A DNA stretch of 64,000 nucleotides, from assembly GCA_964187785.1 (NCBI GenBank), contig OZ076412.1, positions 61,628,001 through 61,692,000 of the forward strand, in the 5' to 3' direction. A model generated the notes under the pieces. It was not told the DNA's origin and searched no databases. It worked only from the letters and a program-made list of their open reading frames with translations. This document shows, piece by piece, positions 40,901 through 51,400 of this stretch (position 1 is its first letter; each line of letters opens with the position of its first letter). The translations under genes were made by a program, and so were the position numbers. This DNA is from Amphiscolops sp. MND2022. Taxonomy: Eukaryota.

Positions 40901-43900
40901 CGAACGGAGACCAGATTGAACGCATTATGTAACGAATCCCTTTTATCGCAATATCACAGACCGGATTATTACAAAGTTCAAATATGCCATGTGGAAACTT
41001 CGTTCAAGCTGGATTTGGCTTCCCACTGAGCATGTCATCCAAGTACCTGCCAAAGCAAAAATGAGTAGAAAAAGTCATCGCGTGAGAACGAGAATGAACC
41101 TCCACCATATCCAACACCGGAATCTTAGGCTACTAAGTAGATTGTTTTCGGAAAAACATTACATCTGTTTTATAAGAGAAAAGCGTGAAATGTTCATTTT
41201 TGACAGTTTTATATCTGTTTTACCATTCTTAGATTTTTCGTGGGTAATAGAAAACAAAAATGATTGTGTAGTAACTATGGAGATCGAGGGAATTCAAAGC
41301 AAACCGGAAACAGCTCAAGGTTTGTGAAAAAATGTTTTAAATATGCAGAGGGACAGTATTTTGAAAGAATTTATCAATTTTACAGAACCAGAAAACACCC
41401 GGAAAGACACCCACGAGACTCGAAAAACGCTGGAAATGTCAAAAACCCAACTTTTTGGAAAATGTCGAAAACTGTTTCCTTCTGGAAAAAGTCTCATAAT
41501 GCCAAAAAACCAAAAAGGACACCCTTGAAGTTCGCAAAATGAACCAAAATAACAAAAAGATTTATAGAAGTGTCTATTTTGGCTTTGGAAGTTTCTGTCA
41601 AACCACTGAGAGTACATGATACACATGATATACACTATGGTATCAAAAAGCTACGTACACCAACATTTTTTTAAAAAAACTCAGAACAGTAAAATTTGAA
41701 ACAACTGTTGAAACAAATAATAAATCAATATCCCGTCAAACTACCATGGTTTTTGATTACCTTCACCAGACGATTCTCATACGATGAGTACAAGTTGCGA
41801 ACAACATCAGGGTTTATGTTGTTCCACACTTCCATAACCTTTTCTTCTAAATTCTCCCAGGTAACAACCTGACCTCGCAAGCTTTTTTTAAAAATGGCCC
41901 AAATATTTTCAATAGGATTCAGGTCAGGACTGTAAGCTGGCCAATCCAGCACCTCCCATTGCTCTTGGGCCAGAAAATTGCGAACAACTTCACTTTTGTG
42001 TACTGGGGCGTTGTCTTGCTGGAACACCAAATCCGGTATATTCAAATGTCGATCGTGTTGCTTTAAAATCTCCAAATATCCGTAACTGTTGAGTGTTGCG
42101 GGACATTCAATTAGCATTTTCCTACCATCTGATCTGATGGCCCCCCAAAACATCATAGATCTTTTGTCTGTGCGTATTCCCTGTATGTTTTTCGGGCAAA
42201 AGCGACGACCAGTTTTCCTGAACACCCGCACAACGCCATCACTATTCAAGCGCACACGGGTCTCGTCTGAGAATACGACGTTTTCCCAGAAGCCTAGTTT
42301 CCATCCAGTCGAATTTCAGAACAAAAATGCAAAAGTTCGAGTGAAACAAAAACAACCTTCCTCAAGCTTACAATAACACCCAAATCTGGCCAGCGAATAT
42401 GCATCTAAGGTAGTGCAGAAGGTCCCCCCTCTCATTTTCTCTTTTTTAACGCAACATACGAAACCGAACGAGACTAAAGGGTCCCCTTTCAAACTTTATG
42501 ATATTTTGGTGTTTTGAGGTTTTTTGTCTTTTCATAAAAGTTCTGAGCAGAGTTTCTACACTTTGCGCTTTTTGAGCCTTAGGTTTAGCGCCGACTTTAG
42601 ATGTTCTCGTCTTGTATCATTGACAGCACCATCAAAAGCGCTATTAGTTTACTCTACCAAAGTGATTGATTTGATAAAATTTTTTATTTCGTTTTGGTTT
42701 TTTCGGCACTTTGAGATTTTTCTCAAATATTTTTTCTTTCAAAAAATTCCATAACTTTTTCCCATTTTCGGTGAAAATTGACGCTGGATAAAAACCAAGG
42801 GGCTTTTTCAACATTCTCGAGCACCAGCGTTTTCTGACCAGCCTTTGTTTTTTGTTCAAGTTAAACTTTTTTGCGGCTTTTCTAGAAACAATTCCGTACT
42901 TCTTCAGGATTCTTCGAATAGTGCATTTAGAAACTGTCTTTGACGTTGAAAAAGAGTTTTGCAGTACTCTTACTCGTTCTAATGTTGTTTTTGGGTCTTT
43001 TTCCACTCTTCGAACTATTAGTCTTTGCTCTTTTTCGCTGAGCTTTTCTGGCCGGCCTGGAGGTTTTTTCGCCACATAAGAGTTCGTTCTCAAAAAACGC
43101 TGATAAGCTGTTTGAGCTGTCGATCGAGATTTAAGTCCCAACTTTTCTTTAATTTCTTTGTATGATAAACCCTTTTCGCGAAGTGTAACGATTTTGCAAA
43201 CAACGTATGAATCCAAAGGTTTGACCATTTTCAACAATGTTTAATTCAAGAGTGATTGATTTCACTTCCGGTTGAGAATGAAAATGAAAAGTTCTTCACA
43301 AACTGACTGAGATTTAATTTTCAGCTGTACGTAGCTTTTTGCTACCATAGTGTATGTAATGTTCGATACATGTAGTCTTCTGATGACTTGATATGCATTC
43401 TTAGTCCATGAATAATTCAGAAAGTGAAAACAGCACTAACAGCGAGCAGAAGAAAAATCGCAGCCATTTTCTTGTCGTAGAAAGTTTGTCCATTGAATGA
43501 CTGGAAGGTTATGACTGATCCAGAAAACGCCAGTTGCGATAGAAGAAAGCATGCGCAAACCATCATGAGAGACGTGGCCGCTTCTCTCTCAGGTGCTCCA
43601 AATCGGTCACGTGGGTTTTTCAGCCTTCGTGCAATGCGGGCACTCCAGAAGAGAATGAGGATGAAAGGGACTCCTCGTAGTAAAGGCATGAGACCCTTTG
43701 TGTACACTTCGCCAATGACTGCAGGGAATCTGGTGTTACCAAGATGAGGGTTACCGGCTATGCATCCCTCTTCTCTCTGCTCCGCCACTAAAGGCGAAGG
43801 TAAAGTGAGAATGAGAGCGGCCACAAGCAGTGGCAAGACTGCGCGGCGAGCAACCTGTGTCTTTCCTCTTCGTCTGTAATCCATGGGTTTTTCAATAGCC

Positions 43901-46900
43901 CAAAGTCGATCATAGGTCAAGCATGTCAGTATGAAGTTCGCTAAAAAAGACTGGCAATAGATTAGTAGAACTTTAACCATTTACAGCTGGAGCGCAATGT
44001 TCTTTTCCCAAAGGCATTTGAAATCTCAAGTGTCCCATTAAATAGATAGTGAAAACCATGACGGCAACTTGGATTATTTTTATTTTCCATCCCCGAATTT
44101 CCATATGGGAAAGGAAAATTACTGATCTGCGTTTTTTTTCCAAAGTTTGCCTTGTTCCAGTTTTATATCCAAATCGAAGTGTTCACCAATAGAATTCAAG
44201 TGATATATACTTGGTTCTATGCATTCTGTATTTGTTGAGATTTTTGGACGTTTTTGGTTGATCCCAAATTGACCCCAAAAAACTTCTAATTTTTTCCCTT
44301 CATAAAGATTTTTTGTACAATTTGAAAATTTTATCTGTGATTTAAAACTTCCAAAAAGTTCCATGAAAAATCTATCCAGGATTTTAATAGTCCGAAAAGT
44401 TTGGTTGAAAACGTGTCTCAAAAAGAGTGTTCGTTTGTACAAAAATTTCGAACATGTTCGTGAGTTTGAAGATCCAAGTTCCATTCCTCACACAGTCGCA
44501 CAATTTCTTGACATTTTAAAGCATTTTTATACACTTTTCCAACATTCGCTTGGATGATACGATCCGAGATGTTTGAATCCGAAACAAACCAGCTATCTAG
44601 TATGTTTTTTCACCTTTTTCTATATTTCACCTATTTCGAACAAATTTTCTATAAGTTAGATTATCCGAAAAAATCAAGAGAAAGACACGAGTTGTGTTGG
44701 AGAAGTGTCTCAAAGAACACAAAAAACTAGAAAATTCGAAAAATTGCTAGATTAAGACACCTATTCAGGCACTTTTTGCATACTTTTTGATTGTTTCGAG
44801 AAATTTTTCTTCCAAAAAGTTGATCAAAAAACCAGTAAGCTACTTTGTAAAAGTAATTTGATGTTTATAGTATTGAAAAAAATCTTCAAAAATACCCCTA
44901 TAAAGCTAAACCGTCTTTTTTGACTACTTTTAACAATTTTCGCACGTTTCGAGATCTGTCATCGAGTGTGCTTTCACAGTGAGAAAAGTTGATTTTTGGA
45001 TAGAAAAGGCCCCAAATGGACACCAAAAAAACATTTATCATTTTTGATCATCACACAGTCATTTTTGTTCAGTTTTTGAACGTTTTCGAGGGTTAAAAAT
45101 TTACACAGTTAAAAACAAGGGTTACAATTTTACTCTATGACAACAGAGAGTTTTAATTTGACACATATCATCCAAACGTTTTTAGAAGAGAGATTAGAAG
45201 AGATATTTTCTGTTGTCTGTTCAAAATAAGCAATGAAGCCTCAAAAAACTTTTGAAAACATTTTAAAATGTTGACAGTTTCGTCTGAAAGGAAAACCTAC
45301 AAGTTTCAAAAACAAAACATTCAATATTATATTTTATGAGACCAACTGATAGAACAATCAATTGTCAAGAAAACGTTTTCATATACATCTGTCTATTTTG
45401 ATGGTTATTACTACTTTCGGTGTTCAGAAATCGAAACTGAATATTTATGTAGTATTCGCTTTAGGGGAAACGTAACTTGGGAAAGCTTCGAAATGACATC
45501 AAAACTGCACAAAAATTCCAAAAATAGCTACTTTTGAAATTTAGCAGCAATTTTTGTACCGGTTTAATGCATTTTCGTAGTTCACACTATCCAAAGATGA
45601 AGATATGATTGAGGAACGAAACAACTATCCAATAGGTTTTTAGAAACAACAGTGGAAAATTTTTTCAAAGAAGTCCGCAAAAAGCTCACAAAATAAAATT
45701 TCTCCAATTTCAACCGTGTTAATCACTTTCCGTGCAATTTTTCGCACATTCAGAGAGGTATGAAGAATCGGATGCGGGACAAAACAGCCAATTTCAAAAC
45801 GAGACAAAACAGCCGATTTTCAAAACGGAGCAAAAAGAGTGCTGTTACAGCCAATATGCATGGAACTTGATTTATTTGAAGAGGTTCATATTTGTTGCAT
45901 GGCTCGGTCGCTTCGCTCCCTTCGCCAAGTATCAACATTGAGGCATGACTATATGGCTCGTCGCTTCGCTCCTGCATTCAAGACACTAGGGGTATGTGAA
46001 CATAGCTTACTACGTTAAAATAATAATTTTATTGACTGCTAATCTTACGCATTGACAATATCGGTAATTTCTATTTTGTACTGTTTCAAAATCGGCTGTT
46101 TTGTCCTATTTTGAAAATCGGCTGTTTTGTCCCGTTTAAAACCGGCTGTTTTGCCCCGCTGCCGAAGAACCATCTCGTTGGAGAACAAAACAATTTCCTT
46201 CTTAGTATTTCCTCAAAATGAAATAACCGAGGATATGTTTTAAATAACACAAAATCAAGAGCGAAAAGTGTTGATTTTGCAACGTTTCCTCGGTAATCTT
46301 CACTGGTTTTTGTAGTATGATAGTTCATGGAGTTCAATAACAAAAAGTGTGGCTAGTGAACATACTTTCTGTGAACTTTTGTACACCATTCACGCTCGGA
46401 CCTTGAGAACAGGTCGTAACTAATTTCTTTCTTGACAAAAATTATCCTGCTGATTTAGCGGGCGGCCTGTTTTCTTTTATGCCCCTCTTGACAATTGCAC
46501 TGGTACGCAGCGTTTATAAATACATAATGCTCACAAAGACAATAATTTCATTGTACGAGTTAGATCGAAAATTTCTTTGAGAAAATTTGATTCGAAAAAG
46601 TTTGGTAAAAAGGAAATGTCGGTCAATGAAAGCTGAGTCAAAAACGTTCAAAATGCGTTGTAGAAATTCATTTTGTTCAAAATAGTTTGAGTTTTGAGCT
46701 ATTTTGACCCGTGTAGGCCAGTGATTTCGGAATAACTATAACTATGGAACGATAGGTCGTTATTTTGACTATTCTAGAACTCAGTAAAAATTGATACGAG
46801 AACTATAAATACACGTTAACATTGATTTTTATTTTGTATTTCCACTTAGAAGAGTTTATTCTTGCATTTAGTTAGTGCGCAGATCAATACAACATACCCT

Positions 46901-50300: not shown

Positions 50301-51169
50301 AATTGATAGTATCGGAAACTGAAGTCGGCTCCAATTGTGAAGTAACAATTTTCCCCAAAAACTTTCATATTGGCAAAAGTAACCCTCAAATCTACTTTCG
50401 TTGAACTAACGTTGTCAAAATATAAAAGAGAGGACCCTTCCAAACAAATTTCGTTTAAACATCCAATACGAAATGGGTACTTCGACAGGGTTGAAAACAA
50501 ATACTAGGGAAAACCACTTTCATAGTCGCGTGACACAGCTCTAGCGGTCACCATTATGCAACGTCACAAAGTCTTAGATTGTTGTTTGAATGCCGACAGG
50601 CTGTTGTCTAACACAATCGTATTTCCTTAAAGATAGAAAAAGGCATTTGCCACAAAAATTATTACAACAATTCAGTTGAATCATATAGCTTTAATGGTTT
50701 TCGATTGAGTTATAGTCAGCTAAAACAAGGAGATGCGAGATTCGTCGACTAGCAGGGAACAGCGGAAATCAGAAGCGCGCCAACAGTTTCGGGATTGCCA
50801 GCATTCTTGAATTCAGCAGATACAGCCCCTAAAACAGAAAGAAAGGATTGATCGGACATCTTTCTGGTCGCAGCAAACGAAAAATATTCAATGTTAGTGA
50901 GTGAGTGAAACATTACGAAACGTTACAAAGGAACGACCGAGAATGGCAGCACTCATGAACAACTTCAATGAACAACCGGTAGAAAGAAATTGTTAAGCAA
51001 CCTCTTCTTATCACTGAGCACAGCTGACAAGGAAAATCCCACGAAAAAATTTCCGCACATGAAAGTGTCAACGGTGAACAGGAAGAAAACAAGTCGGGAA
51101 CGGCCCAAGTCGGCGCCATATCTAAGGCTCAAAATTAGCAAAAAGACTTGAAAATGTCACAGTATTGGT

Positions 51170-51400
51170 GATTTGGGGACCCTTTTGTGAAAATAATTTG
51201 AAAAAGCCTCACAATGCCGAAAAAGTGAAAGGAGGACCCTTTGGGATTTTTCAACATTCATTCTGTCGGATAATGTCAAAAAATTGAAGGGGACCTTTTG
51301 TTGAATTTTTTTCATCAAAAAGTCTCACAAAGCCGAAAATACTCTAAGGGAGTACCTTTTGGCCCCGTTGAGTTTCTTAGATGATGTAAAAATACTACTT
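51170..51400. repeat. Dispersed non-coding repeat family (GGGGACCCTTT and AAAAAGTCTCACAATGCCGAAAA motifs)
   Basis: Motifs repeated locally; related motifs at ~41490-41530 and, on the minus strand, ~42420-42500. Confidence 0.55.

Follow-up and report, generated by a model that had tools for sequence, protein, structure and literature searches.

Does the 502-nt interruption of a Tc1-like transposase gene in the genome of Amphiscolops sp. MND2022 belong to a mobile, intron-generating element that happened to land in one transposon copy, or is it an intron of the transposon itself? The question arises from a window of 64,000 nt (assembly GCA_964187785.1, contig OZ076412.1, positions 61,628,001 to 61,692,000 of the forward strand), and all coordinates given below without a locus name are positions within that window. 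A first-pass annotation, made from the letters of the window alone, had read the interruption as an introner, i.e. a mobile element bearing terminal inverted repeats (TIRs) that inserted into this Tc1 copy, duplicated a TAG at the target site, supplied one of the splice sites and makes introns elsewhere in the genome.

Anatomy of the transposon and its interrupted gene

The interruption lies in a complete transposon, here called family A, which is laid out on the minus strand as follows:

41633-43352, minus strand: complete transposon of family A (Tc1-like, DD34E; 1,720 bp), delimited by its arms, aligned copies and TA flanks
43353-43354 and 41631-41632: TA target-site duplications of the Tc1 element
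43326-43352, minus strand: 5' TIR of the Tc1 element, first letters CACTATGGTAGC
42796-43228, minus strand: transposase exon 1, coding for amino acids 1-144 and the opening base of codon 145, with the helix-turn-helix DNA-binding domains (translation; Pfam HTH_Tnp_Tc3_2, E = 8.3e-11)
42294-42795, minus strand: phase-1 GT..AG intron of 502 nt, first letters GTTTTTATCCAG, last letters CTGGATGGAAACTAG, present in every family A copy (38 distinct full copies and genome search)
41725-42293, minus strand: transposase exon 2, amino acids 145-333 and the stop codon, DDE catalytic domain (translation; Pfam DDE_3, E = 1.6e-19)
41633-41659, minus strand: 3' TIR of the Tc1 element

The inverted-repeat arms of family A extend over 41623-41659 and 43326-43362 (~27-37 nt, 92% complementary), and TA was found on both sides of all 112 element matches among the retrieved loci, so that the element carries both the target-site duplication and the terminal inverted repeats of a Tc1/mariner transposon. 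A further 29 genomic copies are 98-99.5% identical to the Tc1 element of the window over ~1,726 bases, the TA sites included. Family A is a young, high-copy Tc1 family of an animal genome.

On the minus strand, exon 1 ends with ...CCC CTT G at 42796 and exon 2 begins with GC TTC TGG at 42293; joining 43228-42796 to 42293-41725 yields a single 333-amino-acid open reading frame (ORF) free of interruptions, which contains KKPLGFWENVVFSDE. The second D and the E of its catalytic triad are separated by 34 residues (counted on the translation from QQDNAP to NPIE), the DD34E spacing of Tc1-like transposases, and the protein combines Tc1-like helix-turn-helix DNA-binding domains with a DDE_3 catalytic domain. 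The coordinates, the length, the junction and the protein given in the first-pass annotation for a GT..AG stretch whose removal restores the ORF were all correct, and the inverted repeat at the ends of the interruption was found as described, with 10 of 12 positions matching as DNA at a 3-nt offset.

Among the 38 distinct full copies of family A, the GTTTTT donor was present in all 38, the AACTAG acceptor in 37, and an intact spliced ORF in 9. Older, decayed family A copies also keep the intron.

A number of observations concern the surroundings of the element. Upstream of it, an ORF at 43420-43980 (minus strand) corresponds to an exon of a rhodopsin-family G protein-coupled receptor (GPCR; Pfam 7tm_1, E = 1e-13); as its stop codon lies ~65 nt upstream of the Tc1 element and in equal orientation, the transposon lies within or right at the 3' end of a host gene. 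Elsewhere in the genome, two family A copies are found 3.1 kb apart in equal orientation (G000:C7:49775885-49776386 and 49779024-49779525, loci L026 and L027), a pair that may reflect local hopping or segmental duplication. Read evidence came from four unlabelled contig sets of one study (runs X1 to X4), none of them recorded as RNA. DNA contigs of runs X2-X4 connect the flanks of the Tc1 element at 41627 and 43354, omitting 1,726 nt and placing four other letters in between; this joint, which is anchored by just 28 letters per side in a flank that looks repetitive, may represent an allele lacking the element, a paralogous site or the footprint left by an excision. An Rfam scan of the Tc1 element at a permissive threshold gave chance-level matches only (E above 1), a tRNA scan found no tRNA, and a scan for promoters and terminators of bacterial type, signals not relevant to a eukaryote, stayed at shuffle level.

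Sister family B and the age of the intron

A protein search with exon 2 identified a second family in the same genome, family B (locus L061), with 73% amino acid identity to family A. It comprises at least 38 full copies of 99-100% identity, and the spliced ORF was intact in six of seven sampled copies; two family B loci are L061:1148-3055 and G000:C8:22492313-22493867. The family B gene is interrupted by a GT..AG intron of 906 nt (first letters GTTTTTTGTCCAGCC, last letters GGCTGGATGGAAAAG), at a codon and in a phase identical to those of family A (KKPLG|FWENV) and with ends homologous to those of the family A intron. The two introns align over no more than ~15 nt at their start and ~60 nt at their end, where a pyrimidine-rich block is followed by the terminal arm; the interiors do not align.

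Tc1/mariner transposase genes are usually intron-less (PMC3828361). An exception is Minos of Drosophila hydei, a Tc1-like element whose transposase gene has two exons separated by a 60-bp intron (PMC2874221). Families A and B resemble Minos in that the Tc1/mariner transposase ORF is split by one element-borne and apparently spliceosomal intron, a single GT-AG intron being found in all copies of both families. They differ from it in intron length (502 nt in A and 906 nt in B, versus 60 bp) and, unlike Minos, their intron has conserved base-paired ends and has probably been colonised by host repeats.

Relatives without the intron were found at greater distance. Locus L062, from another assembly (59% identity), has no interruption at the intron site; a third Tc1 family in the same genome (L069-L074, 37-56% amino acid identity to A) is likewise intronless at the site and mostly degraded. 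The nearest intronless relatives, at 55-57% amino acid identity (L080-L082 and L079), are Tara Oceans marine metagenome contigs and a short contig of GCA_013332935.1, which hints at a Tc1 lineage circulating among marine organisms.

Maximum-likelihood tree building on the catalytic domain placed A and B together in one clade (support 100/100) amid intronless lineages, which include the third family of the same genome as well as genomic and metagenomic DNA contigs from elsewhere. Since family B carries the intron at the identical codon with homologous ends, the intron predates the split between A and B; and since all relatives at or below 61% identity are intronless and A and B are one clade, a single gain on the stem leading to A and B is the simplest history.

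Across both exons, the comparison of A with B gave a pS of 0.82 (saturated) and a pN of 0.16. Synonymous saturation together with so low a nonsynonymous divergence over both exons indicates that these have been maintained as one coding unit while the intron was present, and maintenance as one unit with the intron in place requires that the intron be removed precisely. Collectively, both exons are under selection, the intron is present in every copy, its position is shared with family B and its ends are conserved. We consider it likely that the Tc1-like DD34E transposase gene consists of two exons and that the 502 nt are its resident intron, passed down to A and B from their common ancestor, rather than a separate mobile element.

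The terminal stem and the origin of the intron

Four further features lie within the intron of the window copy:

42783-42795, minus strand: 5' stem arm, made up of intron nt 1-13 (GUUUUUAUCCAGC) and including the 5' splice site (pair probabilities; arm conserved in family B)
42401-42618, minus strand: intron nt 178-395, matching a very abundant dispersed repeat of the genome
42312-42352, minus strand: pyrimidine-rich block, located upstream of the 3' stem arm and conserved, the sole interior block that aligns between the A and B introns; probable branch-point and polypyrimidine region
42297-42309, minus strand: 3' stem arm, made up of intron nt 487-499 (consensus GCUGGAUGGAAAC), which stops 3 nt short of the 3' splice site

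When the introns were folded at full length, the stem paired with a probability of ~1 in both families and measured 13-14 bp. In the family A consensus it runs from G1-C(-4) through C13-G(-16) with two G.U pairs, and in family B from U2-A(-2) through C15-G(-15) with three. Pair probabilities of the 5' arm ranged from 0.78 to 1.0 in the window copy, which has a G-to-A change at the inner end of the 3' stem arm, and from 0.97 to 1.0 in the family-consensus type. The calculated duplex energies were -19.9 (A) and -19.6 kcal/mol (B) for the sense strand, versus -13.3 and -14.1 kcal/mol for the antisense strand. Among 5000 random window pairs drawn from each intron, just three (A) and one (B) reached the observed energy.

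The inverted repeat that matches at 10 of 12 positions as DNA pairs at 12 of 12 as RNA. Both mismatches are G.U on the sense RNA, so what had looked like two imperfections of a TIR are wobble pairs of the mRNA strand. We infer that the inverted ends are an RNA stem under selection, the two lineages available giving no statistically useful covariation. A candidate compensatory change between A and B (G-C to C-G) disappeared when the family consensus was used, as it had come from the private G-to-A change of the window copy.

If the 502 nt are a resident intron, its working may be pictured as follows. The Tc1 element would be transcribed and the host spliceosome would cut the intron at G|GU...AG|G, in phase 1; removal of the intron from between the DNA-binding and catalytic domains would yield an mRNA for the 333-amino-acid transposase. 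The 13-14-bp stem formed by the first and last intron bases would close the intron into a loop and bring the splice sites together. The GUUUUU donor is a poor match to the usual metazoan consensus, and because it looks weak, the stem probably helps or tunes splicing. Against this account stand the poor donor, whose position within the stem might impede U1 binding just as well as promote splicing, and the small share of sampled A copies with an intact ORF.

Unspliced RNA would encode the DNA-binding half of the protein only, followed by read-through tails of 53 codons in A and 13 codons in B, which are not conserved. The third intron of the P element is reportedly retained in a tissue-specific manner, giving a truncated repressor. 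The likeness consists in an intron of a DNA-transposon transposase gene whose retention would leave the DNA-binding part only; P element retention, however, is regulated and makes a repressor, whereas the read-through tails of A and B show no conservation. A regulatory use of intron retention in these families would be a conjecture.

Conserved inverted ends would also be expected of a transposon-derived intron, which brings us to the alternative that survives best. It concerns origin only and is compatible with residence of the intron in A and B: a TIR-bearing non-autonomous element, spliceable by chance, may have entered the transposase ORF of the A and B ancestor, its TIRs then being kept by selection as an RNA stem and its interior being replaced. 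Terminal inverted repeats of 13-14 nt do abut both splice sites in A as well as in B, and the outgroups are all intronless, hence the single gain on the A and B stem; yet no donor family with these ends was found in today's genome and neither A nor B shows a recognisable target-site duplication. Every mismatch of the repeat is G.U on the sense strand, a pattern to be expected from selection on RNA and one that needs no TIR ancestry. There is precedent in other eukaryotes, from which introns that derive from transposons and have paired TIR ends have been described (PMC11282704, PMC9860276). On balance we hold such an origin to be unlikely, while taking it seriously.

The closest parallels to it are TIR-paired, transposon-derived introns such as the non-canonical introns of Fritillaria borealis and the nonconventional introns of euglenids (reviewed in PMC11282704). 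As in the 502 nt, pairing of their ends brings the junctions together. Those introns, however, are numerous, reside in host genes, have mostly non-canonical borders and are linked to MITEs, whereas here a single canonical GT-AG intron resides in a transposon. Were the intron of A and B indeed the fossil of a single introner-like event in their ancestor, with its ends kept as an RNA stem which the weak donor needs or which sets the rate of removal (a combination which we think unlikely, though by no means remote), the transposon would depend on a structured and possibly regulated intron, retention of which would give a protein of the DNA-binding half.

Intron removal and the search for mobile copies

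Evidence on removal came from the contigs of run X1. These amount to 129 Mb, versus a genome of 1.07 Gb, and the set looks like a transcriptome rather than a genome. Four X1 contigs cover the region (41831-42294, 42265-42623, 42594-42824 and 42795-43021), with 30-nt overlaps and with breaks at 42294 and 42795. As one G is shared on each side of the intron, 42294 and 42795 are exactly the nodes predicted for a mixture of the 42796-to-42293 junction and the unspliced form, and with just about six such nodes along the element a double coincidence of the break points is very unlikely. The spliced junction had no occurrence in the genome itself, nor did it figure among the contig joints listed. Exon contigs of X1 were several-fold deeper than intron contigs, contig depth not being a measure of level. 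The contig break points, as branch nodes of a de Bruijn graph, suggest that spliced and unspliced molecules coexist.

The converse possibility is that the interruption is never removed, having been fixed as a disabling insertion in a non-autonomous Tc1 lineage that is moved in trans, with the restoration of the frame a coincidence. A weak donor would fit this, as would the broken ORFs in 29 of the 38 sampled family A copies; but the strong purifying selection on both exons between A and B (pN of 0.16 with saturated synonymous sites), despite an intron in both, would be hard to account for. So would the exact conservation of GT, AG, phase and codon position between the families, the intact spliced ORFs (9 of 38 in A, six of seven in B) and the fit of the X1 break points to a spliced form. 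We regard permanent retention as quite improbable, and return to the resident intron as the preferred reading.

The interior of the intron bears on whether the 502 nt could be mobile. DNA contigs were 30-50 times deeper at 42454-42636. The abundant repeat matched by intron nt 178-395 gave more than 4,300 first-look candidates in the genome, many copies being 93-95% identical; independent copies with a sharp 5' boundary occur in the flanks of other loci, and the matches to the copy in L030 are colinear. The repeat is also seen at 51088-51393 of the window and at L030:646-944; its 5' end starts with AACAAGACGGGAACGTC and continues with variable modules of the GGGACCCTTTGGG type. Pieces of it are found in the introns of both Tc1 families. 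The repeat may be a SINE, a MITE or a foldback element. The 906-nt intron of family B holds a palindromic region of ~280 nt made of similar module-type repeats, and tandem duplications were seen inside the intron of one genomic copy. Nucleotides 178-395 probably represent a secondary colonisation of the intron by a host repeat. Because the repeat begins at a sharp 5' boundary of its own (intron nt ~178), it shares no ends with the intron.

Introners, as described in Micromonas, Aureococcus and others, are numerous introns, nearly identical to one another, that occur in unrelated genes, often bear TIRs and target-site duplications and show presence/absence variation (PMC9860276, PMC11282704). 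The 502 nt resemble them in their GT-AG ends, in their terminal inverted repeats and in the precise restoration of the ORF upon removal, and their interior does contain pieces of an abundant dispersed repeat. They depart from introners in being found only inside one transposon, with neither a target-site duplication nor empty sites in close relatives, and in occupying the same codon in a sister family.

Searching the genome with the 502 nt gave 1,570 first-look candidates, among them 40 scored matches of 98-100% identity. The best 30 genomic matches were all located inside the same Tc1 family (30 of 30), so that the expected independent copies of an inserted element did not materialise among them. 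The junction of exon 1 with the intron occurred 117 times in the genome (with up to two mismatches), against no occurrence of the empty site expected of a family A copy from which the intron is absent. The corresponding empty site of family B was likewise not found in the genome, nor was an intronless B copy. An insertion into this particular Tc1 copy is contradicted by these counts.

Neither the 5' nor the 3' end of the intron occurred beside a non-Tc1 flank anywhere in the genome. The 13-nt terminal motif was found 19 times outside a Tc1 context, versus 14 times for its reversed control, which is the frequency expected by chance. Similarly, in the DNA contig sets the intron ends were not deeper than the exons, the internal piece alone being deeper. 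The idea of an intron-generating element at large in this genome finds no footing in these figures.

The proposed duplication of TAG fared no better. The intron is flanked by TTG and TAG in family A and by TCG and AAG in family B; the left flank is CTTG in the junction copies listed for A and CTCG in family B, whose right end is AAG instead of TAG.

The first-pass annotation had itself named the absence of other copies of the insert and of Tc1 relatives with an empty site as speaking against its reading. This is what was found, save that intronless Tc1 relatives do exist, all of them distant (at most 61% amino acid identity). What stands of that reading is a precise phase-1 GT-AG intron with inverted-repeat ends; the mobile insertion, the TAG duplication and the introns elsewhere do not. 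At the level of copies of at least 90% identity, the introner is refuted by Tc1-only copies, zero solo ends and zero empty sites, and overall we see next to no chance of it.

Equally remote is a stem-dependent removal that bypasses the spliceosome, of the kind known from euglenid nonconventional introns and IRE1-type unconventional splicing: a terminal stem abutting the junctions and a poor 5' splice-site consensus would suit it, but the ends are canonical GT-AG in both families, a pyrimidine-rich block is conserved upstream of the 3' end, the adjoining rhodopsin-type GPCR exon shows the host to be an animal and no IRE1-type loop motifs were seen.

With the intron assigned to the transposon, a false lead is removed, and nothing at this locus points to an active element that generates introns. 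In its place stand two young and apparently active Tc1 families which would need the host to splice a long intron whose ends are joined by a stem. The introns of A and B offer a natural system for asking whether end-pairing helps or throttles splicing from a weak donor, and could reveal whether intron retention limits transposase output.
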